The notes: generated by a model not told the origin, from the letters alone. DNA of 64,000 nt from Haliotis rubra (GCF_003918875.1 NW_025765559.1:1364001-1428000); one strand, 5' to 3'; positions 1,359 to 59,969 are shown, numbered from the stretch's first letter. Translations and numbers: made by a program.

Positions 1359-4300
1359 GTAAGTTCCAAACTAAAATCTGAAACTAAATCTTATTTCATG
1401 CACTGTTCTGCTTCAGAAGTTATCAGTATTTATGAATTATGATGTATTTCTGTGCTGACTTGTGTTTGAAAACTGTGTGTCAATTCTTGACAGTTTTAAT
1501 TCATTGCTGAAACATGTTACCTTGAACTTTTGTAACTGAGGGGGAGTAACTCTGTCCTGGAAGCTCACTGTTCACCCAATAGTTTAGTGTCAGTAATTTG
1601 TGTGTTCTTGTATGTCTAGCTCCCATCAAGACTTAGAAATTTGAATGTAGTAAAGACAAAATTATTTTCTGTTTGTAACTTACGCTGATGCAGATGGTCT
1701 ATTCCCATTCCTAGTCATTGTTAGAATAGGCCCCACATGAATTATGAGTTAGTGAGGTGGCTAAATTTACTAGGTGGTATTTATGGTGTTTTTAATTTCA
1801 TTTGTACCCACTGTCTCGTTTAGACCATGCTGTTGAGTAGTTTGAATATTGCTAAGGTGACATTAAACATCTACAGCAAGAATGAAAGTAAATGCTGATG
1901 GCTAGAGAAAAATGTTCATGGTAACCTGTCTCCTTCTCCATATCTCCTTCTCCGTGTCACTCCCTGTCTCCTCTCCATATCTCCTTTCTCCATGTCTCTC
2001 TGTATCCTTCTCTCCTCTCTTCTCCATATATCTCTCTTCTCCTCCTTGTCCATCTCCTTCTCCAGTGTCACTCCCTTCTCCATATCCCTCCTTCTCCGTG
2101 ACACTCTCCTGTCTCATCTGTCCTTCTCCATGTCACTCCTTCTCCCCTATCCTCTCTCTCCAGTTGTCCATTCTCCATGTCCATATCACTCCTTCTCAGT
2201 GTCACTCTCTCCTCTGTCACTGTCTTCTCCTCACTCTTTCTCCATGTCCTCTCTGTCTCCATCTCTCAGTTCTCCTTCTCACTCTTCCATCTGTCCTTCT
2301 CATGTCACTTCTCTCCTCCGTGTCCTCCTATCCTCCTTATCTCTCCTTCTCCATGTCCTTCTCATATCACTCCTCTCCTATCCAGTCTCCATATCACTTC
2401 CTTCTTCTCATATCATCCTTCTCCATAATTCCTCCTTCTCTGTCATCATCTTCTCTCTCAGTATCCTCCCTTCTCCATCATCTCCTCAGTATCTCCCCTT
2501 CTCCATATCACTCTCCTTCTCTATATCATTTCAGTCTCCATATCCTCCTTCTCCATATCCTCTCTTCTCCATGTCACTCCCTTCTCCATGTCCTCTCTCT
2601 CCTCCATTTCACTCCTTCTCATTATCCTTCTCTCCTCTGTGTTACTCCTTCTCCATATCACTCTCTTCTCCATGTCATTCTCTTCTCCATCTCACTTCGG
2701 CTTCTTCCATATCCTTCCTTCTCTCTATGTCTTCGGTCTCCATATCACTCCTCTCTCACTCTCTTCTCCTCCTCCTTCTCCATATCATGTCCTCTTCTCC
2801 ATATCACTCTCTTCTCCATATCACTTCATTCCAGTCTCCACACCCTTTTCAGTATCCTCTCTCCTCTGTGTCCTAGCTTCTCCATATCACTCCCTTCTCC
2901 ATATCACTCCCTTCTCCATATCCCTCTCTTCTCCGTATCACTCGCTTCTCCATATCTCTCCCTTCTCTATATCACTTCAGTCTCCATTTCACTCCCTTCT
3001 CAGTATCACTCTCTCCTCTGTATCACTCCCTTCTCCATATCACTCCCTTCTCCATATCACTCTCTTCTCCGTATCAATCGCTTCTCCATATCACTTCCTT
3101 CTCTATATCATTTCAGTCTCCATATCACTCCCTTCTCAGTATCACTCTCTCCTCTGTATCACTCCCTTCTCCATATCACTCCCTTCTCCATATCACTCTC
3201 TTCTCCATATCACTCTCTTCTCCATATCACTTCCTTCTCTATATCACTTCAGTCTCCATATCCACTCCCATATTCTCAGTATCCCATCTCTCCTCTGTAT
3301 CACTCCCTTCTCCATATCCTTCTCCCTTCTCCATATCATCACTTCTCTTCTCGTGTATCAATCGCTTCTCCATATCACTTCCTTCTCTATATCATTTCAG
3401 TCTCCATATCACTCCCTTCTCAGTATCACTCTCTCCTCTGTATCACTCCCTTCTCCATATCACTCTCTCCTCTGTATCACTCCCTTCTCCATATCACTCT
3501 CTTCTCCATATCACTCTCTTCTTCATATCACTCTCTTCTCCATATCACTCCCTTCTCCATATCACTGCTTTATCACTTCCTTCTCCATATCATGTTTGAA
3601 TTGACTGTTAAATGTATTCTCTGTTGTTTGGTTACCATTCCAAAGATAGCAGCTTAAAGCAGTAATTGTCTAATATGTATGTCATAGTTGTGACACACAC
3701 ACACACCCCTTTACAAATCTTTAACATTCTTTGTGTAATATAATTTTTTTAAACTTATCCTATCTCACGACTTGCACCTCTCTCTCTTGCTTCAACTTTT
3801 AGTGGAACGACTGTAAACTTTTTTCCATAGGCCTCCTTGTCCATTCGTCCGTGCACTCCATACTGCTCTCCTTAATTAGCTTCCTAGTTCCTAATAAAGC
3901 TTGCAGCATGCTCCACTAATTGCCCACGTGACTACCTTGAATGATCATTCTCTTTCTTGTCGCACGACTGTGTTGACGTGCTGTATATTAGGGACATTAT
4001 TTCACCCTAACATCATGGGGATAATCAGTCAAGAAAAGGAAAGTTTGTGCTCAATGCAAGACGAATTATTCGTCCCTCGGCCATCACTCGTCTTGCAGTG
4101 ACTGTATTGGACAATGTAACTGGAACAAACGATGTGGCAAGTGTAATTCACTAAAAGATGAGGATTTAAAGGCCTACCTTCATGTTTGCCCCCGGAGAAT
4201 CGCGGATACGGACAGGAAGTCAACAGAATCTGATCCCACTCCCGCCAAGCGTATCAAGTTACAGCGACAGAAAATCGTACCTTCACGCAAGAGAGCGACG

Positions 4301-22300: not shown

Positions 22301-25300
22301 ACAAACTGACATGATGGAAGATAACGGGTAAGATGCCATGTGTATGTTTTCCGTTTCAGTGCCAGAATACAGTTAGTCATTCCATCTTTCATCAACCAGT
22401 TAGAAATAGACACACAGAAGACCTGAACATATAATTGCTAAGATGAGGCAAGCATGTCATTTTCTGGTCAGGCATGATGGATAGATTTAGGAAGTCAGAT
22501 AACATGATAATGCTTTTGCATGAAAAAAGTGTTTAACATAGAATGTACATGATGCATGAAAATGTCTCTTAAATCAGTAATGTCTAAGACATTTATTTCA
22601 CCCTGTAGCAAAACCCATGAAGATCCAGGTTAGAAACGTTTTTCAGTAACCCATGCATGTTATAAGAGATGACTAACAGGATTGGGTGGTCAGGTTTGCT
22701 GACTTGGTTGACACATGTCATTGTATGACAATTGCATGGATCGATGTTGATCACTGGATTGTCTGTCCAGACTGGATTATTTACAGACTGCCACCATACA
22801 GCTGGAATATTGCTGAGTAAGCGTTAAGCAACAAACAAATCACCCTGTACTGATTCCATGTGAGAATAGCTTTCCAGTGCCCCCATAGTAGAAGACTACA
22901 AACAAGTTGTGATCTGTTACCTGGCTAATTGTATGACATCTATTACCTGGCTAATTGTATGTCATTGTACCACAGTGATGCAGTTTGTTGCTTGTCAAAT
23001 GCTGGTTTCAAATCAAATATCAACTTGTATTGGAAAGTACAGATTTCTTAGACTGCAGTTCTTAGAATGGGATGTGTATCAGTATATTCTGAGTAGAAAT
23101 CACAAAAATTTGATTCAGATACTACATGGAGTTTTAGGAAGAGAGCTCAAATTTTGTCATTTTCCTATCTCAAATTCACTTAGGCACTATGCTGAAGAAC
23201 CTAAGAGATGTTTGGATGGTAGATTTCAGTTTCAGGGACTCCTGTTGATTGAAATTAGCAAAGTTACAAATTATTGATACCTTCGTCTTATGGATAAAAA
23301 TGGCAAGGGTTTGTTTTTTATGCAATTTTTTATGATTTCATAATTCATATTGAAAACCAACTCTACCCATGCCATTCTTACTACATGTATTAGCCTTTTC
23401 TCAACTAGGAAAATGGTTCTCTCCATTAAATCAGTTCTTTTACTTCCAACACAATAACACTCCGTGTGGAGACTTGGCAACCCCTCCCAATCTATGTGAA
23501 GGAGGTATTGTTTCTGAGCCAGTCAGATGTTAGCTGAGTAGTGTACGTTTATTCCACTTGATATTATGGTAGAATGAGTTAAACCTACTGTTTGTTCAGT
23601 GTGCAAAGTTTGACATTCACTATATGTCTTCCTTGAAAATGCAGTATGGTTATGTGGCAGTACCTGGACTCGGTAAGGATCGTGTCCTCGAAGCAGTGGT
23701 TGACTGGTTGAGTCTATATTACAGAGCACCACATCTATATTATGTAGAGGCACAGAACGTGACGGAGGCACCGTGGCGGCCGGCCAGTACCTGACTGCAC
23801 TAGTAGCAGCCCGTAGGAACAGGATTTTTAAAGGTGTTATCGGACTGCAAAAGATATTCATTTATGAAGTTCTTCCTTATGTGTCTGGTGCATGTTTTGC
23901 CCATGTCAGGAAAATGTTTCAAGGTCAAGGTCAAAACTTCATGGGTACTTTTCTCAAAATGTTTTATCGTTTTTATCTAAAGATATACCTTCTTCAGTAT
24001 GGAGTTCTGCTTTGAATAGGTTTTGGTAAAAGGCTAAGGTCAAACTCATGTTTAATATTTCACCTTAACCCTTATCAAACATGAGTGAACATGTACTTGT
24101 TGACAGATTGACAGCTTGATTAAGGAGAACAGTGCCCTAAAGAGCATCAACATGCAACGGAGGAACGAAGCTCAGGTTTTGCAGAACGGCTACGAGGCCA
24201 GCAAGGGGAGTAACTCTGGTAACCCCGAATATGACTCACTGGATGAGAAAGTGCCACAACGGCCTGTGCGGGATATGCGACCACAGTCAATGTTTGAGCC
24301 CAGAACCTCATTACAAAAGGTGGGTTTTGTCTCACATTTAGACATCTTGCCGTGTGATGATAATATTGATATACTTTGATATTACTGAATTGGCACCAGA
24401 GTTTACATAAACAAAATGCTTTGTCCAGAGTTGCATCCCTTGGGCATGCCAGAAACCATGAGTTCAAATCCTGCTTCATCCCGAATTGTGCTTTGCTGTC
24501 TGTCAGCACCATAGCCATGCAGACCCGTGAAGGTACGGGTCAGAATTGATCTTCAGCAACCCATGCTTGTTGTAAGAGGCGACAAACGGGATCGGGTGGT
24601 CAGCCTCACTGACTTGGTTGACACATGTCATCGTATCCCAATTGCTTAGATTGATGCTCATGCTGTTTGTCACTGGATTGTCTGGTCCAGTCTTGATTAT
24701 TTACAGACCACCGCCATATAGCTGGAGAGTGGCGTAAAACTAAACTCACTCACTCACTCACCTTATAATAAACTGTGCATATTTTTCTCAGAGTCAGTCA
24801 AGAGAAGATCAACTCCAAACCTGTCTGTCTGAAGCCAACATCCGTTATGATGGAGAGAGGGTAAGTGAGTCTACTGTATCTCAACACTGCAGATACCCTG
24901 GATCATCATCTTCTGGGCATTATTCTGGAGTGGCAGAGCAGTTCATCAAGTAACTGGTTAATCAGTATTCTGTATACTAAGTCAATGAAACAGTGTTGTC
25001 ATGTTTTGCAGGAGATAACATGTTTGGGAGTAAACCCAGTAAATATTTGGCCCAACATGGATTTGTCATTTTATACAAATTAGAGATAATGAATCACAAT
25101 TTTGTTTAAGGTTTATCTTTAAGAAATTATGATCCTTTTCTGGATTGTCTCTTCATGTCAGCTGAATGAGAACCCAGTGATACCTCACTTCATATTTGAC
25201 TCAAATTTTCATGAAGAAAAGATTCTGATTAATCTAATTCATAATTGATTTGAGATTTATCTTAAATAAGAAAATAAGGCCTAATAATTATGTATTTTCA

Positions 25301-30609: not shown

Positions 30610-31253
30610 GGACATGTCCATATCTTATGATAGGGACATGTTCATATCTTATGAGGGGACCAGTCCATATCTTATAAGGGGAACCAGTTCATATCTTATG
30701 TGGGGGACATGTCCATATCTTGTGAGGGGGACATGTCCATATCTTATGAGGGGGACATGTCCATATCTTATGAGGGGGACATGTCCATATCTTATGAGGG
30801 GGACATGTCCATATCTTATGAGGGGGACCTGTCCATATCTTATGAGGGGGACCTGTCCATATCTTATGAGGGGGACCTGTCCATATCTTATGAGGGGGAC
30901 CTGTCCATATCTTATGAGGGGGACATGTCCATATCTTATGAGGGGGACATGTCCATATCTTATGTGGGGGACATGTCCATATCTTGTGAGGGGGACATGT
31001 CCATATCTTATGAGGGGGACATGTCCATATCTTATGAGGGGGACCTGTCCATATCTTATGAGGGGGACATGTCCATATCTTATGAGGGGGACATGTCCAT
31101 ATCTTATGAGGGGGACATGTCCATATCTTATGTGGGGGACATGTCCATATCTTATGAGGGGGACCTGTCCATATCTTATGAGGGGGACAGGTTCATATCT
31201 TATGAGGGGGACATGTCCATATCTTATGAGGGGGACAGGTTCATATCTTATGA
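30610..31253. repeat. 24-bp minisatellite (gagggggacatgtccatatcttat)n, about 26 units
   Basis: Direct inspection. Confidence 0.95.
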
Positions 31254-31677
31254 TTGGAAATGTTCTTCTCTGTTGATAGGGACATTGTGTTTATAGATGG
31301 GAACATGTTCTTGTCTGCTGAGGAGGACTTGATATGATAACAAGGCTGGAACATGTTCTCGTCTAATGATGGAAACTTGTTCCTTTCTAGTGACGAGGAT
31401 ATGTTTGTGCCTGGCTCAAGTTCTCAAGTTTTGGTTGACATGTTATTGTGTGTGTTCAGAAGAAAAACAGTTGATGACAGTTTGAGTCTGTAATATGATT
31501 TAAAGGTTTAGCACTAGTGTAGAGTTACAGTTTGGAGATCACTAGGATGAAGTTTGATGTCAGTTATATCATTAAAACAGTCATAATAACTGACATTAAG
31601 TATAATTTTCCATTAGTAACATTAACTAATATGAATGTTGTATTACTGTCAAAAGACATCATATCACACCTTTACAT

Positions 31678-33214
31678 ACCAGGGAATCTGCCTAAACATG
31701 TCCACCCCTCCCCACACCCACCAGGGAATCTGCCTAAACATGTCCACCCCTCCCCACATCCACCAGGGAATCAGCCTAAACATGTCCACCCCTCCCCACA
31801 CCCACCAGGGAATCTGCCTAAACATGTCCACCCCTCCCCACACCCACCACCAGGAATCTGCCTAAACATGTCCACCCTCCCCCACACCCACCAGGGAATC
31901 AGCCTTAAACATGTCCACCCCTCCCCACACCCACCAGGGAATCAGCCTAAACTTGTCCACCCCTCCCCACACCCACCAGGGAATCGGCCTAAACATGTCC
32001 ACCCTCCCCACACCCACCAGGGAATCAGCTCTAAACATGTCCACCCCCTCCCCACATCCACCAGGGAATCGCCTAGACATGTCCACCCTCCCCACACCCA
32101 CCAGGGAATCGGCCTAAACATGTCCACCCCTCCCCACACCCACCAGGGAATCAGCCTAGACATGTCCACCCCTCCCACACCCACCAGGGAATCAGCCTAA
32201 ACATGTCCACCCCTCCCACATCCACCAGGGAATCGGCCTAAACATGTCCACCCCCTCCCCACACCCACCAGGGAATCGCCTAAACATGTCCACCCCCTCC
32301 CTAAACATGTCCACCCCTCCTCCCCACACCCACCAGGGAATCTGCCTAAACATGTCCACCCTCCCCACACCCACCAGGAATCGCCTAAACATGTCCAACC
32401 CCTCCCCACATCCACCAGGGAATCGGCCTAAACATGTCCACCCCTCCCACCAGAGAATCTGCTCTAAACATGTCCACCCCTCCCCACACCCACCAGGGAA
32501 TCAGCCTAAACTTGTCCACCCCCTCCCACACCCACCAGGAATCTGCCTAAACATGTCCACCCCTCCCCACATCCACCAGGGAATCAGCCTAAACTTGTCC
32601 ACCCCTCTCCCACACCCACCAGGAATCGGGCCTAAACATGTCCATGCCTCCCCACACCCACCAGGGAATCGGCCTAAACATGTCCACCCCCTCCCCACAC
32701 CCACCAGGGAATCGGCCTAAACATGTCCACCCCTCTCCCACATCCACCAGGGAATCGCCTAAACATGTCCACCCCCTCCCCACACCACCAGGGAATCAGC
32801 CTAAACATGTCCACCCCTCCCCACACCCACCAGGAATCAGCCTAAACATGTCCACCCCTCCCCACACCCACCAGGAATCGGCCTAAACATGTCCACCCCT
32901 CCCCACACCCACCAGGGAATCGGGCCTAAACATGTCCACCCCTCCCACCCACACCCACCAGGGAATCGGCCTAAACATGTCCACCCCTCCCACCAGAGAA
33001 TCGGCCTAAACATGTCCACCCCTCCCACAAACATGTCCACATGTCCACCCCTCCCCACCAGAGAATCGGCCTAAACATGTCCACCCCTCCCCACACCCAC
33101 CAGGAATTGGCCTAAACATGTCCACCCCTCCCCACCAGAGAATCTGCCTAAACATGTCCACCCCTCCCCACCAGAGAATCTGCCTAAACATGTCCACCCC
33201 TCCCCACACCCACC
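31678..33214. repeat. About 44-45-bp C-rich minisatellite (cctaaacatgtccacccctccccacacccaccagggaatc..)n
   Basis: Direct inspection; the minus strand carries G-runs compatible with G-quadruplexes. Confidence 0.95.
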
Positions 33215-36940: not shown

Positions 36941-38803
36941 AAACTTGAAGCACATCAAGCACATTAATTGTTTCACCATTAATGATTGTGTGTACATCTT
37001 GTCATTTGAGGAAATAGTTGAATGAATCACCACTAGGTATTACTCAACACGAGGAAGTGATAACAGTAACATTATGTATTTTTTACGTTCAATAGTAATT
37101 TAGTAATCTAACAAATATACCCTCCTAAAAACAATACCCCATAGCTCAGCATTGTATAATAATAGTAAAAATAATATTGAATAATAATCTATGTAATAAC
37201 TTCTCATGACGTCACGTTTTAATGTAGCTCACACAATACATTGTATTTTTTACTGACGTTGACCTGATTGAGATCACCACGCCTGTTTGCGGGGAGGCTT
37301 TTCAAAGTTAACATCAATCAGCCGGGTCTTGTTGGATGATACGCTGATAGTAATAGCCAGCGATTTCTGTCCTCGATCGAATCTGAACTTCCATGTAATA
37401 TCTCTATGGGCGTCGCTGCATGTTTTCACCTTCCACATCAGTTAATCTCACCTCATCCACTTTGTACATACTTTCACACAAACGTCAAATTCGTCTAAAT
37501 ATGTAGAGATGGTATACGTTTTTGTTAAAAATAATTAGTTGTTGCACGTAGCCGTGAATGGACACCACCGTCATTCAAATTCTTTGAATTTGATTTAATT
37601 CACAGAGCTTGTCAATAACGACGGTATTTTAACCAAATGTACTAATCAGTTGTATGGTTCATACGTTGTTTTAGTAACAAGTTCAAATGAAGTTGCTTTC
37701 TTAATTTTCTTATATGTTTATACTTATGACAAACAATCGTATACATTCGTGACCACTCGTGTCATTCCGGTCTTGCAGCTAAAGATGGGCAATTAAAATA
37801 AGAATGTCGACTGTGGTTTATGGAAAGAGCCGAGTGTTGACGAATGTCGTGTTTCTCAATAGTCAGGCCTTCAGACACACATTTACCGTTGGACCAAACA
37901 AAATACACTCAAATAGTTTTTTTATGTTTCTAATATTCCAAGGGTATGAAACCCAACTCCGATAGGGCAAACAAGCAGTATCTGACCGTACTGAACGTTC
38001 ACTAACCTTTACACGGCATATCATGCGTAACAATCGTTTCTGAAGCAATTACGTCATATCTAGACCATTTGCACACCATTTACCTGTTAAGAGTGTAACC
38101 ATTTAGGAGGGGGGGTTGGGGCATTTTGGTTTGAGATTACCATTTTTGATAAATTTTCAGGTGAGTTATATTTTCCAACATGGATAGTTGCCTGTTTTAG
38201 GCATTTATCTGTAAGGGAATTAATTCTGTTCCTACAATGCGGGTCAAACGTAATACGTTTAAATAAATCATGGTCTTATTAAAAAAAATATTCCACCCCC
38301 TCCACTTAAAACAATTAGTTGGATCCCATTGGGAAAACACCTTTTTTACAGCGATTTTGTTTCTTTGTAAAAATAATTTTCGTAAATGGTCAGTTATTGC
38401 AAAGGATTTTATGACACTCTCCGATCTTATTTTTACTCATTTGGGAAATCACATATAGTCTTATTGAGTCACACGAACACCACTAGCCTGGTGTCAGCGG
38501 ATCCTGTAGAGTCTTGAGAAGCTTGCAGCCTTTGAATTACTTTGCATGCATATTTGAGACAGATATATGTAACACATCTAAGGCACAACATGGCTGCTCA
38601 ACTGTACCACCTGTATGTAGTATGTGTATTCTAGAGGAATAAATACATATACAATTCACCTGCGTTAGTATTTTCCCATAATGTAAAGAAGGATGTGGGG
38701 TATAATAATGTATGTCAAACTACATGTACAACTGTGACGGCCAAGAAAGATTGTTACCAAGTGTCCATGAATATATTGTTCCGCTTAGACCTGAAAAACA
38801 AGG

Positions 38804-38960
38804 ACAGTGGGTAGCCTAGTGGTTACAGCGTTCGCTCGTCAGGTCGAATACTGGGTTCGACTCCTTACATGGGTACAATGTGTGAAGCCCATTTCTGGTG
38901 TCCACCGCCGTGATATTGCTGGAATATTGCTGAAAGCGGCGTAAAACCAAACTCACTCAC
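38804..38960 (+). mobile_element. SINE family B
   Basis: Matches the family consensus. Confidence 0.82.
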
Positions 38961-40089
38961 TCTGAATAACAAACGCACCAGCACAAGAACTAACAACAAT
39001 TATTACAATTAGCTGACGTATATTTCCGATACGCACACATTTTATCTCCACATTTGTTTCTCTGATTCCGGCACGGCTGTGAAAAAAACGTCACAAGTGA
39101 CATGCATGCTGCATGTAAACCTCGTGCGGCTGGGTGGAGGAAAGCGTTCACAAATGTCCGTTATTCACGTGCGTGTCACGCAACCATCACTTGGAAGTCC
39201 GAGAAAATAAACAACAGCAGTGAGTGAGTTCATATTGATGAATTCCAGTTTAAGGCAACTGACACAACTCCGACCTCAGTCAAGTTTTCTCCTTTTTATA
39301 CACGATACAAAACTGACAATGAAAAATGTTTAAAAGTCCTAATGTTTGGGCTAATAATAAATATGTGTATTCCGACGCGAAGAAGTTAAATAGCCTCGCT
39401 GAACCCCAACGGGGGTTTGATCTCGTGTTTTCGATGATGATGATTTGGCGATGTGCGCTTTCCGACACAATGCGTATTTCGCACACTGGTCCACCAAGCC
39501 ATTTAGTGTTGCGAATCTTCACAGCACAAAGCTAACTCCTACTCGGCCTTGAGTACGAAATATATAAGATTTCCTGCTTGAATCTGCCCATCATGTCCAG
39601 TACGACAGCCATGTCCCCTGTTAACATGATACTTTTGTCACCTGTGGTCGAACTGGCAATACCCGTGTTATCAGTCTTCCCAACCAACGATGTTCTGTTA
39701 AGCCTTTATCCATCTAGTCTGGAAGAGATTGAAAAGATATCTGTACTATGTAGTCTAACCGATGTTTCTGTATACATTGTACCTTTATACATATGCGTCA
39801 TAATTTCGATGAAATATTAAACTGCTTTACATACAAAAAGTGCAAGAATTATTATATATTTTGTTGTTGAAAAGTTTCAAATTGACATTGATCTTGATTT
39901 AAAGTTTCTTCGACCATGATATTTTGAAACGAGAGCAACATCAAACCGCAGTAATATTATGTCTTTTAGAGGCGTTTAGAAGTTGTTACAGATTACCAAG
40001 ATATTTTATGGATTTTTGCTTCTGTATTCTTTCCCACACAACGTTTGGGGATCATTACAGATCCCTTCATCAGATGAAGTGACTTCACC

Positions 40090-40253
40090 TGAGTTTAGTT
40101 TTATGCCACACTCAGCAATATTCCAGCGATATGGCGGCGGTCTGTAAATAATCGAGTCTGGACCAGACAATCCAGTGATCAACAGCATGAGCATCGATCT
40201 GCACAATTGGGAAGTCAGCGAGTTTGACCACCCGATCCCGTTAGTCGCCTCTT
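40090..40253 (-). mobile_element. SINE family A, partial
   Basis: Family body and tail. Confidence 0.78.
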
Positions 40254-41539
40254 ATTGTGCGGGAAAGAATAAGAAGCAAAAATCCAGAAAATATCTTGGT
40301 CACAGTAATATTACTGTCATCCTGTTCTGCAGGGTTGGGCTTTGAAAATATTGAAATATTCGAACGATTTCAGCGCAGTTAAATCAGATTTGAAAAATAA
40401 ATAGGAAAGAATGCATGGTTATTGATGTGATATGGGGTAGCGGGAGTACTGCCCTGAAATATCGATCCTAATGAACATTAGAATACATTAAGGACATGTC
40501 CTTTAGACATTTAATGAATAATGCACAATATATGGCAAACACTTTTCGCAACAAATGGATTTCCTTTATTGACAATCTTTACAATATGGGATATGTAAAT
40601 ATCAGGATTTCAGAAATTGAAAGCTTAACGTTAACAGATTTGTAGACTCTGATGTTTCTATCTCCACTTTTTAATGTGTGAATAACGGGATTTGTAAACA
40701 ACTACCTGCATCTTTTAGAAATATCCGATACAGGTTGCAGAACCATTATGAAAAAAATAAATAATGTTTCAGTTTCTAATCATTTAAAAGAAACTGGACT
40801 TCAGAAACAATCAGCATCAGATTCCCTCCTTGACCAGACATCATTACAGTAGGCCACATAAAGAATATTCCTGTTTCTCATCACATTTTGTTTTTACATG
40901 TTATTTTATTTTGTGTCCAAAACCCTTTGATTTCTGTGGAAATTTACACCTCTTCCCCGATAGAAAATCTAAACATAGAAGTGTAAAAAAATCATGCACA
41001 TTTTGAGTCAAAGTTGAATTTTTCTATTGTGAAAATAAAAATGAGTCAAGTCAAGAATTTTTTCGGGCATTAATACTCTCACTTTTAGCCTGCATCTCAC
41101 TCTGCCTACATCTCATTCTGCCTACATCTCATTCTGCCTACAGACATATGAAAGGAAGTATCCAGTTGGCTTCACATGTTATCCGAAGGGAATATCAAGT
41201 TCTCTCATGAAAATATTATATTTGGCTTGAAAGGCAAAAACAATAATCCACTTAATGTGGTCTTTCAACTCAAACAAAAAACCGAAGACACACTAAAAAA
41301 AAAAAAAGACAAAAAAAAAACCAAAACAAATTCTTCCATGTTTTCTTGTGGGGAGGTAGGATCAAGTACTATCTATCGCTTTCTCATTCTGTCTACACAG
41401 TTGTGACCAACAAACCATGACTTGCATGTGTTGTTTTAGCTGTAGGCAGAATGAGAGGACACCATTGTTTATACATGTCCTTATATCAGCTAACTGATCC
41501 GAATTGAATATCGGCTATATCTATTCAATAGTTTAAATA

Positions 41540-41545
41540 TTTATT
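41540..41545 (-). terminator. Putative polyadenylation signal of the BH3 gene
   Basis: AATAAA on the minus strand about 180 nt after the stop codon. Confidence 0.5.
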
Positions 41546-41723
41546 GTTTCGGGATTTAAGAATATTTAACCAAATGTCGCTCATATCTTAAATAACAAAC
41601 TTTTAGGACTGGTTTTCTACTTCAGCACCCACCAGTTCTCCCACCCACAACCGTACCAGTATTCCGGAGTAAAATATCCACAACTTACCACTAGAACTCT
41701 CACACACAGCTCCCTCGCATGGA

Positions 41724-42109
41724 TCAAAGGCAATGTAATATACAAGCACACGTGAAAAGTACATGTCCCACAGAAAATCCACATCGAAAAGAACTTCTTT
41801 GAAGTATTTTCATCTTTTTTCCGTCACGTGTTTTCCATATTTCATCTCCAATCTTCCGTAACCTTTTCGCCATTTCTCGGTATTCTTCGCAAACATCCGA
41901 ATCCACACCACACATCTCAGGTGTCATACTTTTTGAAAGAAAAGATGCTCTGTTTTTAACAAATGTTATAGTACGAGGCATACTGTTCCCGTCATGCATC
42001 AAGTTAGTGGTTACCGCAAGTACGGCATCGTTGTCCTGATCAATGGGTCACGTGACACAGGAGGTGCCAAAGGATCGATACGGTGATCCTTATGAACTTG
42101 GATGGACAT
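41724..42109 (-). CDS. Candidate BH3-only pro-apoptotic protein: 91 aa from ATG 41999, or 128 aa from ATG 42109 if one C is missing in a homopolymer at about 42045
   Basis: MAKRLRKIGDEI fits the BH3 consensus (compare BIM IAQELRRIGDEF); C-terminal hydrophobic tail GFSVGHVLFTCACILHCL; upstream intron 42121-42197 (gtgagta...tttag), TATA box and AATAAA. Confidence 0.7.
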
Positions 42110-42325
42110 GTAGCGGTTATCTAAATATTGATTGACAAAATTACGAACTTTTGTATGATATGAAGGACTTAAAATCCATACGTTGTATAATACTCACCAG
42201 ATGATAGAAATATTCAGTGTCAAAAATTAACGAAGGGACAAAGCTGACTGGCTGTTTTGGAAATGATGCGACTTGGGCTGGCTCTCACTCATGTTAAGTC
42301 TCACTTCATAATAAACAAATTAAAT

Positions 42326-42332
42326 ATTTATA
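42326..42332 (-). promoter_or_regulatory. TATA box of the BH3 gene
   Basis: TATAAAT on the minus strand about 130 nt upstream of the splice donor at 42197. Confidence 0.5.
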
Positions 42333-42725
42333 CACGTTGTTTTCTCCCGATTGTCGTGAGAATGAATTAACACAATATCCCTTTCTGAGGTTGTTTAGAA
42401 TTGTATACAATGAATGATTTTATTTGGGAAGAAGCAAAGCTTCAAGAATGATTGACATTCTCCCGTGCAGTTTTCTCAACACAAACACTATCTGTGCAAT
42501 CAGTGTTTGCCCTTAACCCTGAAATGCTGCAGGCCCTAGGGACCCAGGGCTCTTATTCTCGAAACGTTCGTAGCCCTAAGAATTCTTAACTTTGATCGTA
42601 GCCAGTGTGTTAAGAATGGGCTTAAGAAGTTCGTAGGACTACGAACGAGAATAGCTAGCCAGAACCATAAAAAGTTGTGGGTCCTGATCAGAATGTGTAG
42701 GCCCTATATTTTAGCTACAAGATTG

Positions 42726-42972
42726 TGAGTGAGTGTGAGTTTAGTTTTACGCCACACTCTGCAATATTCCAGCTATGTGGCAGCGGTCTGTAAATAATCG
42801 AGTCTGGATAAGACAATCCAGTGATCAACAGCACAAGCATCGGTCTACACAACTGGGATACGATGACATGTGTCAACCAAGTCAGCGAGCCTGACCACCC
42901 AATCCCGTTAGTCGCCTCTTACGACAAGCGTGGGTTATTGAAGATCAATTCTAACCCGGATCTTCACGGGCC
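42726..42972 (-). mobile_element. SINE family A
   Basis: Full length, flanked by agctacaa repeats. Confidence 0.88.
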
Positions 42973-43976
42973 AGCTACAATATAAGGAAATCCCTGCAAA
43001 CTAACAAACTGAGTTAAAGAGTTTAATTAAACTCCAGTGAGTGACTAGTCTTTATTTACAACAAAATCAACATCCATGTCAAGATCCAAGTCTTCTGAAA
43101 AGTCTGAATCAGAATGTTCAGACAGGGGGTGTCAGTAATTGGGAATGAAAGAGTTGTCGGCCATAATGACCTGCAGAAAACAGAAGCTGTGGGTCCGAGT
43201 GGTTTTCAGTCGGCTTCGGATGTGATTCGAACGCTTTGTGCAATGTTTGATAAAACGGAATTCTTTTACTCCTCGTTTACTTTTTTAAAAATATTTACTT
43301 GAAAATAGCTTAATATACACCCTTTGCCTTGCTCAAATCACATCCCATTTGTACACGACCATCTCCAAACATGCAGTACGATGTACCTCCCTTGTGGATA
43401 CTAAGGTTATATAAATGTTAAGCAGCATGTTTTCTACTCGTGTGTAGCCGCGAATAGCTGAATATGACTGGTGCGGCGTTGAACAATATTCAGTCGACGT
43501 TTGTGAGAACTGTCTCACTTAAAAACAACTTTAATGGATATTGTTATTTTGCAGAAAAGCACTTTCAAAACGAATTCGAATACCTTTGGCTTTATATGAA
43601 TAAGCTGGCTATTAAAGTAGTTTCTTTATGCTAATACAAAGTCACAACAACTGATATTTAGAACGATCTGAAATATCTGGAACGGGTTGGAATCTACTCA
43701 TGCCTTTACCCAAACCAACAAGACGTTTATGATTTTCGTGTCCAGGGTGAGGGCGTAAGATTGACGTTACGTGGATGTAGTCCTGCATTGTTATCCTTAA
43801 ACTGATGTAATTAATATAACAGTGAAAGGAAATCACCCTTTATCCTGCACGGTAAACTTCGACGCCGTATTAGCAAATTATGTAAACCAGCTTTTCAAGT
43901 GGATGTCATTATCTTACCAGTGTCAGGTGGGCGTGTCAGACAACGACCATCACGAATGACGTAACACATGAACCTG

Positions 43977-44120
43977 GGCCCCGTTTCACAAAGCTCTCGT
44001 AAGCCTAAAATCTCGTTACTTTTCTCGAAGTATTCATTCTGTGTTACAGTATAGAAGGTTCAAATGCTGCGAGAAAAGTTACGAGATCTTAGGCTTACGA
44101 GAGCTTTGTGAAGCGGGGCC
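43977..44120. mobile_element. Palindromic MITE (ggccccgtttcacaaagctctcgtaagcctaa TIR), PIF/Harbinger-like
   Basis: About 50-bp near-perfect inverted arms. Confidence 0.75.
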
Positions 44121-53479: not shown

Positions 53480-54637
53480 ATGTGGTGGGTTTGTCTGACA
53501 CTGACACTGAGTGTATGTAACGGGGCATCCATTCACGATGCGAGACGTTTACAAAGTTACCTGTTCTCAAACTACACATCTGAGCACAGGCCACTGAACA
53601 ACCAGAGCGAAACAGTCAAGGTGTCAGCCAGTGTTAACCTGTTAGACATAATTGACTTTGACGATGTGAAACAACAGTTCATATGTAATGCTCTGTTCAT
53701 TATAGACTGGAAGGATGAGTTCTTGGTCTGGGATCCTGAGGACTTTGGTGGGATCAAATATTTCACGTTCAACAATGGCTACAAGGCATGGTTTCCGAGC
53801 CTAACGGTGACCAACACACTGGAAAAGCGAGACGTTTTCAAGGAAGATACTCAGCGCATGACAGTTTTCAGCAACGGGACCGTGCTGTGGTTTCCGTCCG
53901 CCATCTTGAAGACGTCTTGTCCACTCAATGTCCGCACTTTCCCCTTTGACGTCCAGGAATGTTCCATATACCTTATGGCCGTGCATTACACGGCCAAAGA
54001 AGTGGAATTTGTGACTGGAAGTGATAAAGTCCACGTTGATCGATTTCAAAGAAGCGACCAGTGGGATTTACTGGACACCAGTTTATCATCAATCAGGACT
54101 GGTGATGTGGACAAGTGGCGTATTACCCTCAGATTTCAGCGTCGACCGTTGTTCTACGTCCTCAACGTCCTTATCCCCATCGTCATCCTGTCCATTCTCA
54201 ACATGGCCGTCTTTGCTGTCCCTGTTGAATCTGGTGAAAAGCTCTCCTTTGCCGTCACAGTGCTTTTGTCACTGATCGTCTTCATGACGTTTGTAAGTGA
54301 ACTCATCCCGAAGACGTCGACAGGGATATCCATGTTGACGGGGTATCTAACGACGGTGACAGCTTCTAGTGCCGTCAACGTCATGTTGATCATTGTTGTT
54401 CTCATCCTTCACAACAAACCGAATAAAGAAGAGATTCCAAGGTGTTTACAGAAACTTGTTTCCTTAGCTCGTAAGGTATCTTGCAGGAAGATTTATCCCT
54501 TGGACCCCACGACCATTGACAGGTCGGTGGGCTGGAAGGATGTTGCGGATGCACTGGAATATTTCTGTCTGAGAGTGCTTCTGGTTATTTTGATCATATA
54601 CACAACCATGTTCTTCGTCGGACTAACGGTGTTCTGA
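53480..54637 (+). CDS. Intronless Cys-loop ligand-gated ion channel, nAChR-like non-alpha subunit (385 aa)
   Basis: Signal peptide, RP.NN, WKDEFLVWDP, Cys loop CPLNVRTFPFDVQEC, four TM helices, GEKL at the start of M2; no vicinal Cys. Confidence 0.93.
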   Translation: MWWVCLTLTLSVCNGASIHDARRLQSYLFSNYTSEHRPLNNQSETVKVSASVNLLDIIDFDDVKQQFICNALFIIDWKDEFLVWDPEDFGGIKYFTFNNGYKAWFPSLTVTNTLEKRDVFKEDTQRMTVFSNGTVLWFPSAILKTSCPLNVRTFPFDVQECSIYLMAVHYTAKEVEFVTGSDKVHVDRFQRSDQWDLLDTSLSSIRTGDVDKWRITLRFQRRPLFYVLNVLIPIVILSILNMAVFAVPVESGEKLSFAVTVLLSLIVFMTFVSELIPKTSTGISMLTGYLTTVTASSAVNVMLIIVVLILHNKPNKEEIPRCLQKLVSLARKVSCRKIYPLDPTTIDRSVGWKDVADALEYFCLRVLLVILIIYTTMFFVGLTVF

Positions 54638-58799: not shown

Positions 58800-59969
58800 A
58801 TGTGGTGGGTTTGTCTGGTGCTGATGCTGACACTGAGTGTCTCTAACGGGGCATCCATTCACGATGCGAGACGTTTACAAAGTTACCTGTTTTCAAACTA
58901 CACACCTGAGCATAGGCCACTGAACAACCAGAGCGAAACAGTCAAGGTGTCCGCCATTGTTAACCTGTTAGATATAACAGACTTTGACGATGTGAAACAA
59001 CAGTTCATATGTAATGCTCTGTTCACTATAGACTGGAAGGATGAGTTCTTGGTCTGGGATCCTGAGGACTTTGGTGGGATCAAATATTTCACGTTCAACA
59101 ATGGCTATAAGGCATGGTTTCCGAGCATTACGGTCACCAACACACTGGAAAAGCGAGACATTTTCAAGGGAGATACTCAGCGCATGACAGTTTTCAGTAA
59201 CGGCACCGTGCTGTGGTTACCGTCCGCCATCCTGAAGACGTCTTGTCCACTCAATGTCCGCACTTTCCCCTTTGACGTACAGGAATGTTCCATATACCTT
59301 ATGGCCGTGCATTACAAGGTCAAAGAAGTGGAATTTGTGACTGGAAGTGATAACGTCCATGTTGATCGATTTCAAAGAAGCGACCAGTGGGAATTACTGG
59401 ACACCAGTTTATCATCAATCAGGACTGGTAATGTGGACAAGTGGCTTATTACCCTCAGATTTCAGCGTCGATCGTTGTTCTACGTCCTCAACGTCCTCAT
59501 CCCCATCGTCATCCTGTCTATTCTCAACATGGCCGTCTTTGCTGTCCCTGTTGAATCTGGTGAAAAGCTCTCCTTTGCCGTCACAGTGCTTTTGTCTCTA
59601 GTCGTCTTCATGACGTTTGCAAGTGAACTCATCCCGAAGACGTCGACAGGGATGGCTATGTTGACGGTGTATCTAACGACGGTGACAGCTTCTAGTGCCA
59701 TCAACGTCATGTTGACCATTGTTGTTCTGGTCTTTCACAACAAACCGAAACCGAATGAAGAAGAGATTCCAAGGTGTTTACAGAAGCTTGTTTCCTTAGC
59801 TCTTAAGGTATCTTGCAGGAAGATTTATCCCTTTGACATGACCTTCAAAGAGAGCTCGCTTGACTGGAAGGATGTTGCTGATGCACTGGAATATTTTTGT
59901 CTGAGAGTGTTTCTTTTTATTTTGGTTATATACACATTCTCGTTCTTTGTCGCACTAACGGTGTTCTGA
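58800..59969 (+). CDS. Intronless Cys-loop ligand-gated ion channel, nAChR-like non-alpha subunit (389 aa), tandem paralog
   Basis: Collinear and highly similar to 53480-54637, same motifs, intact ORF. Confidence 0.93.
   Translation: MWWVCLVLMLTLSVSNGASIHDARRLQSYLFSNYTPEHRPLNNQSETVKVSAIVNLLDITDFDDVKQQFICNALFTIDWKDEFLVWDPEDFGGIKYFTFNNGYKAWFPSITVTNTLEKRDIFKGDTQRMTVFSNGTVLWLPSAILKTSCPLNVRTFPFDVQECSIYLMAVHYKVKEVEFVTGSDNVHVDRFQRSDQWELLDTSLSSIRTGNVDKWLITLRFQRRSLFYVLNVLIPIVILSILNMAVFAVPVESGEKLSFAVTVLLSLVVFMTFASELIPKTSTGMAMLTVYLTTVTASSAINVMLTIVVLVFHNKPKPNEEEIPRCLQKLVSLALKVSCRKIYPFDMTFKESSLDWKDVADALEYFCLRVFLFILVIYTFSFFVALTVF

Follow-up and report, generated by a model that had tools for sequence, protein, structure and literature searches.

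The 64-kb stretch of abalone DNA that we analysed (hereafter the window) carries on its minus strand a small open frame which extends from a TTG codon over positions 41724-42002. Translation from its first ATG, at 41999, would yield a product of 91 amino acids; starting from the second in-frame ATG, at 41981, the product would have 85. The predicted protein contains EEYREMAKRLRKIGDEIW, followed by a basic stretch, KTRDGKKMKILQR, and then by a hydrophobic and cysteine-rich end, CGFSVGHVLFTCACILHCL. Before the first ATG the frame is closed by stops both in the window and in the corresponding locus of a second species (see below), and a 7-nt indel falls just before the ATG, so that the coding sequence is best described as a self-contained single exon. 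The same observations led us to discard an upstream coding extension or an upstream coding exon, and the small ORFs located upstream were rejected as coding because their frame differs between the two species. The features of the locus are collected in Table 1.

Table 1. Features identified at the locus, in window coordinates, with the evidence that defines each of them.
Feature	Position	Strand	Evidence
Single-exon coding sequence, 91 codons plus TGA stop	41724..41999	-	ORF list, sequence, orthologue in the second species
Conserved amphipathic helix, residues 38-56 (EEYREMAKRLRKIGDEIWK)	41832..41888	-	Lowest-divergence block, helix prediction, hydrophobic moment
BH3 core, residues 43-54	41838-41873	-	Pattern present in both species
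Hydrophobic cysteine-rich tail, residues 73-91, candidate tail anchor	41727..41783	-	Hydropathy, helix prediction, conservation
Conserved non-coding block, including the E-box GTCACGTGAC	42030..42168	-	Identity between window and second species
GGTAAGT, heptamer resembling a consensus 5' splice site	41683..41689	-	About 35 nt past the stop in both species

In genomic contigs the ORF has the depth of a single-copy sequence flanked by high-copy repeats, and no paralogue of it was found within the 64-kb window. Exact look-ups of the 85-, 91- and 92-aa forms returned nothing from the protein collection, and as none of the public protein sets searched contains the ORF, it is unannotated. The surroundings are repetitive: directly upstream, at 42520-43130, lies a very high-copy interspersed repeat, with a summed depth of millions compared with ~10-50 in the unique flanks, whose translated signature LVVRGD occurs at 24566, 25650, 42928 and 60862 (at least four copies in the window), and 40904-41500 is a moderately repeated stretch. 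Elsewhere, a tandem satellite at 30614-33058, GC-richer and strongly GC-skewed, produces artefactual long ORFs on both strands (GTCPYLMR and HVHPSPHPPGN units), and the segment 2001-4000 (GC skew -0.71, AT skew -0.42), whose overlapping long ORFs (1912-3657 and others) have no Pfam match, is probably low-complexity repeat DNA. The channel cluster named as a neighbour in the first-pass annotation was confirmed as two intron-free Cys-loop channel genes on the plus strand (53480-54637 and 58800-59969), both with a Neur_chan_LBD domain (E values of 4e-43 and 1e-41) and also with the transmembrane region; no GIT gene was found among the long ORFs of the window.

Searching 1.84 billion representative proteins with phmmer yielded one genuine relative, P0001 (85 aa, E = 2e-21), which is encoded on a 3346-nt Logan contig from run DRR299178 (L001). 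Two other matches, P0002 (2928 aa, a bacterial-type repeat protein, E = 5e-16) and P0003 (2349 aa, mucin/SEA-type, E = 3e-14), were rejected as spurious because their scores were summed over seven repeats, an effect that calls for caution when phmmer output is read for a helical query of 91 aa. L001 is collinear with window positions 42220-41562, where identity is 72%, and also with positions 39816-38220, a span of ~4 kb in all, and on the basis of this collinear alignment we consider it genomic DNA of a related species that carries the orthologous locus. The more distant part of the alignment (window 38220-39816, L001 2008-3241) is made up of three collinear blocks at 68-72% identity, with many indels and no long conserved frame, which look like conserved non-coding DNA or untranslated exons.

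The orthologous ORF occupies positions 348-623 of L001, has 91 codons as well, and is ~76% identical in nucleotides to that of the window. The first ATG, the second ATG six codons on and the stop all fall at the same aligned places in the two species, and not a single gap interrupts the 258 nt from the second ATG to the stop, where ~7.5 events would be expected from the gap rate in the non-ORF part of the same contig pair (37 events in 1281 aligned columns); the corresponding probability is ~5e-4 by Poisson, or ~1e-2 when the rate is taken from the immediate flanks alone. We also ran a neutral simulation in which the observed 69 substitutions, with the observed base changes, were placed at random on the ORF. 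Frame, start and stop were kept together with a probability of 0.021 and the BH3 pattern with a probability of 0.033, and both were retained with a probability of 7.7e-4, a joint figure obtained before indels are counted.

These values have to be weighed against the reading that no protein is made here and that the 680-bp block is conserved non-coding DNA (a promoter, an enhancer or an ncRNA belonging to a neighbour) in which frame and motif have survived by chance. Several signs of weak constraint speak for it: the ORF is no more conserved than the block upstream, where identity reaches 90%, its amino-acid identity (48/91) is that expected under neutrality in the same simulation (47.1 +/- 3.0), and the antisense frames show equal or higher local amino-acid identity. 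Differences are distributed evenly over the codon positions (19/20/23), and the Nei-Gojobori dN/dS for the whole ORF is 0.53. The gene's absence from public protein sets points the same way, as does the fact that the runs bearing the locus contain it in genomic contigs only. Three public runs, all from one sample, contain the locus as unspliced contigs at ~97% identity, with at least seven differences in the ORF, and among those listed six are replacements (D3N, P8A, G31D, C37Y, E38G and V77L) and one is silent. The listed differences include no stop, no indel and no change in the 12-residue core; G31D hits a residue conserved in L001 and E38G lies just N-terminal of the motif. Three of the six replacements (A8, Y37 and L77) correspond to the L001 state, indicating that replacements accrued on both short branches.

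On the other side stand the joint retention of start, stop, frame and motif and the lack of indels quantified above, the 3-8 stops found in the remaining two sense frames, and the distribution of the changes, since the silent and conservative ones cluster in the BH3 block and the tail. Across the two species from which the conservation evidence comes, divergence is lowest in the BH3 block, residues 38-56, with 0.16 differences per site (9/57 nt; 5 silent and 4 replacing codons), rises to 0.23 in the tail, residues 73-91 (4 silent and 7 replacing codons), and to 0.27 in the linker, and reaches 0.31 at the N-terminus (34/111 nt). Within the BH3 block the four replacing changes are M>L, R>K, I>M and W>C, and in the last 12 residues of the tail there are three, each of a hydrophobic residue for another. 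The BH3 codons thus do show the preferential conservation between relatives that had been anticipated. If the ORF is a gene, it has evolved fast outside these two short segments, which limits statistical power; such fast evolution is typical of disordered BH3-only proteins. We consider a purely non-coding nature of the block improbable. The locus is probably a protein-coding gene, small, confined to one exon and lineage-restricted, which in this vetigastropod (abalone-type) genome encodes a fast-evolving microprotein.

The comparison with the second species was less favourable to the two-exon structure that had been proposed for this gene. All of its elements can be read on the minus strand of the window. 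The TATAAAT at 42332-42326, however, is not conserved, L001 reading TGTAAAC within a stretch of 33-43% identity. The putative 77-nt intron (42197-42121) does show its ctg/gtgagta donor and tttag acceptor, but the aligned L001 sequence has a poor donor and is without an AG acceptor, and no part of the flank is better conserved than the interior of this segment, so that the intron is not supported. The AATAAA at 41545-41540, ~180 nt past the stop, is likewise not conserved in position, the nearest one in L001 being located ~75 nt past its stop at a non-aligning place. The spliced model would, in addition, leave three upstream ATGs in a leader of 224 nt. With TATA box, intron and AATAAA unconserved and the coding part contained in one exon, the two-exon model is unsupported; what survives of the proposed molluscan BH3-only gene is the conserved single-copy ORF, whose most conserved segment is a perfect BH3-type motif on a predicted amphipathic helix, with a C-terminal tail of transmembrane grade.

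Upstream of the ORF, identity between the two species peaks at 90% over 42168-42139 and at 83% over 42078-42049 and drops below 45% upstream of 42258, and the conserved block defined by these peaks is probably a promoter and/or a leader. The palindromic E-box within it (42047-42056, minus strand; L001 282-291) precedes the first ATG by ~50 nt, is conserved in both species and extends in L001 to a 14-nt palindrome. It corresponds letter for letter to a USF/TFEB-type (CLEAR-like) site, and it may be a regulatory input of the small gene. Downstream of the stop, the sequence TGGTAAGTTGT, which carries the GGTAAGT heptamer, is identical in the window and in L001 although it is embedded in a less conserved flank, and may mark a 3'-UTR intron or represent some other signal. 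A scan of 40000-44000 for Rfam families and tandem repeats gave nothing relevant.

We then considered how far the BH3 motif itself could be attributed to chance. The BH3 motif is defined as hydrophobic1-small-x-x-L-x-x-hydrophobic3-(G/A/S)-D-acidic-hydrophobic4, with L-x(3)-(G/A/S)-D as its minimal core (PMC10107002). The core reads MAKRLRKIGDEI in the window and LAKKLRKIGDEM in L001, with conservative changes only, and every defining position of the strict form of the pattern, hydrophobic-small-x-x-L-x-x-hydrophobic-G-D-acidic-hydrophobic, is kept in both. This strict 12-residue pattern has one match in the six frames of the window, which is the ORF described here, and second-order Markov simulations give a chance expectation of 0.023 matches per 64-kb window, or well under 1 in 300 for a match located inside an open frame of at least 90 codons. 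Yet ~800 windows of this genome have been read, over which several chance matches would be expected, so a chance motif somewhere among them is not unlikely, a point that counts in favour of the non-coding reading. A degenerate-codon scan of public metagenomes for AK(K/R)LRKIGDE retrieved three matches, all within unrelated bacterial proteins, one of which carries AKKLRKIGDEM letter for letter, and the same scan of viral contigs gave no match. The BH3 motif alone is thus within chance, and the case must rest on other evidence; ORF and motif together exceed chance through their conservation in the second species.

Searches for kin among known proteins located no family for the ORF. Pfam, inspected at E values up to 10, gave no match to BIM (PF06773/PF08945), BMF (PF15185), PUMA (PF15826), NOXA (PF15150), BIK (PF12201) or another BH3-only family. 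In the PDB, neither the whole ORF nor the motif segment nor a two-sequence profile retrieved a significant family; designed coiled coils ranked first, and peptides of Noxa and BIM appeared at E ~1, among them the BIM peptide 1pq1_B, which aligns over the motif. A word-index protein search, covering lengths of 0.55-1.75 times the query so that longer kin would fall outside it, found nothing with the ORF alone and only P0001 with the two-sequence alignment. A language-model search of the ESM Atlas with both orthologues gave PXT1, BMF, BIM, NOXA and BIK as the nearest named clusters, at scores of 0.76-0.87, where values below 0.9 provide a lead only and not membership, while a bacterial control fragment, likewise 91 residues long and carrying an identical motif in the corresponding position, had no match. 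PXT1 is a protein with a BH3-like motif. Judged by these sequence comparisons, the ORF belongs to no known BH3-only sequence family, an outcome that is expected because the class is polyphyletic and is defined by a short linear motif (PMC10107002, PMC11463336).

The predicted protein layout was examined in both orthologues. AlphaFold2, run on the two-sequence alignment, gave a model of low confidence (mean pLDDT of 51, below 50 in the flanks of the motif) in which the N-terminus is disordered and two helices are separated by a break; counted along the 85-residue form, the first (28-54) covers the motif and the second (65-84) the tail. The highest hydrophobic moment over 18 residues, 0.70, falls on the motif in both proteins. 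A basic linker (residues 57-72) precedes the tail, and the last 19 residues have a mean Kyte-Doolittle hydropathy of 1.74 in the window and 2.09 in L001, the customary cut-off for a membrane span being 1.6. Within the tail lie a His in the window protein and, in that of L001, an Arg, which leaves 12 uninterrupted hydrophobic residues; the string VL(F/I)TCACI(L/V)HC(L/I) is kept, its changes being silent or hydrophobic for hydrophobic. Six cysteines are conserved, four of them within the tail. We found no other BH motif and no Bcl-2 fold, with no Pfam domain at E values up to 10 and two helices predicted. These predictions fit a layout of disordered N-terminus, BH3 helix, basic linker and C-terminal tail that would be that of tail-anchored BH3-only proteins, an anchoring mode used by many members of the class (PMC7022251, PMC9171138).

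A conserved microprotein with this architecture could also have a different job. It could be a tail-anchored or palmitoylated membrane peptide that regulates, for instance, trafficking or the activity of a pump or channel, and its amphipathic helix would then be BH3-like in appearance and would not engage BCL-2 proteins in vivo. The evidence for conservation of the ORF applies equally to such a protein, and the lack of homology to any BH3-only family, the designed coiled coils that outscored BH3 peptides in the PDB and the conserved cysteines of the tail all fit it; moreover, motifs of the BH3-like type are degenerate, and false positives are frequent among them (PMC9171138). Three observations argue in the opposite direction: the positions conserved are exactly the four BH3 hydrophobics and G-D-E, with swaps of hydrophobic for hydrophobic residues; the named language-model neighbours are all BH3-only families, whereas the motif-matched control had none; and the layout equals that of tail-anchored BH3-only proteins. 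Another function is accordingly a possible but rather unlikely explanation. We favour a functional BH3-only protein, lineage-restricted and tail-anchored, as a plausible reading to which we assign a probability of roughly 45%.

How the favoured reading relates to known BH3-only proteins can be seen first in HRK, which has the size and layout of a small tail-anchored BH3-only protein. Like HRK and BIK, which have ~90-160 residues, the abalone protein would begin with a disordered segment, continue with a single BH3 helix and a basic linker, and end in a hydrophobic helix; unlike them, it has a cysteine-rich and moderately hydrophobic tail, and it shows no sequence relationship to either. The HRK and BIK families are vertebrate-restricted (PMC10107002 for BIK). 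At the motif there is a close resemblance to BIM (BCL2L11), whose core L-R-(R/K)-I-G-D-E is nearly letter for letter the same and which shares the hydrophobic-small pair four residues upstream and the hydrophobic residue that follows the acidic position. BIM, too, has a membrane anchor at its C-terminus (PMC9171138), but there is no homology outside the motif and no Bim_N or Bclx_interact Pfam match, and the abalone protein is much shorter and encoded by a single exon.

The broader picture is one of lineage-specific proteins. EGL-1 of C. elegans, the schistosome and Hydra BH3-only proteins and Drosophila Sayonara are short or otherwise unrelated proteins, lineage-restricted and recognisable only by their BH3, and are thought to have originated independently (PMC8998228, PMC10107002, PMC7022251). 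The abalone ORF fits this picture, as a candidate, whereas those proteins come with binding and/or killing data; the library-wide phmmer search found no similarity between them and the ORF. For molluscs and other lophotrochozoans, Suraweera et al. 2022 listed in their Fig. 5 'potential', unvalidated candidates in Lottia, Crassostrea, Mizuhopecten, Octopus, Capitella and Lingula, obtained among annotated proteins by BLAST with human Bim, Bad and Bmf and having a BH3 region and predicted disorder (PMC8998228). Compared by description only, those mollusc candidates and the abalone ORF are alike in being computational and unvalidated, but the ORF is unannotated, and it probably represents a different family, because its sole significant true match in the library is the abalone-like orthologue. 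The earlier statement that such proteins are poorly characterised in lophotrochozoans is fair in view of the oyster literature (PMC5550854, PMC8917759), with the qualification that the 2022 survey offers unvalidated candidates (PMC8998228).

If the ORF is transcribed and translated, a BH3-only protein of this kind would act as follows. The C-terminal hydrophobic helix would enter the membrane of an organelle, the outer membrane of mitochondria being the most likely one, and the central amphipathic helix would present M43, L47, I50 and I54 together with G51-D52-E53. Through this face the helix would dock into the groove of multi-domain BCL-2 proteins, the partners being pro-survival BCL-2/BCL-xL/MCL-1-like proteins and possibly BAX/BAK; molluscs do have such multi-domain proteins (PMC11463336, PMC5550854). 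Once docked, the helix would release or activate BAX/BAK and in this way lead to cytochrome-c-dependent apoptosis. Control of the protein would probably be transcriptional, acting via the conserved upstream block and its E-box.

Molluscs possess a full multi-domain BCL-2 set and cytochrome c release. According to oyster papers of 2017 and 2022, the phylum had yielded no BH3-only protein, an absence whose meaning for stress and immune responses they discuss (PMC5550854, PMC8917759). A 91-codon candidate with a BIM-grade motif makes this stated gap in mollusc cell death testable. We tentatively regard the abalone ORF, at somewhat less than even odds, as the first molluscan BH3-only initiator backed by cross-species conservation, a fast-evolving, tail-anchored and lineage-born protein that annotation has missed. 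If this is true, one more functional microprotein would have been overlooked by annotation pipelines, the mammal-like tripartite BCL-2 switch would be complete in gastropods, and very short ORFs would be shown to give rise to such triggers independently in different lineages of animals.
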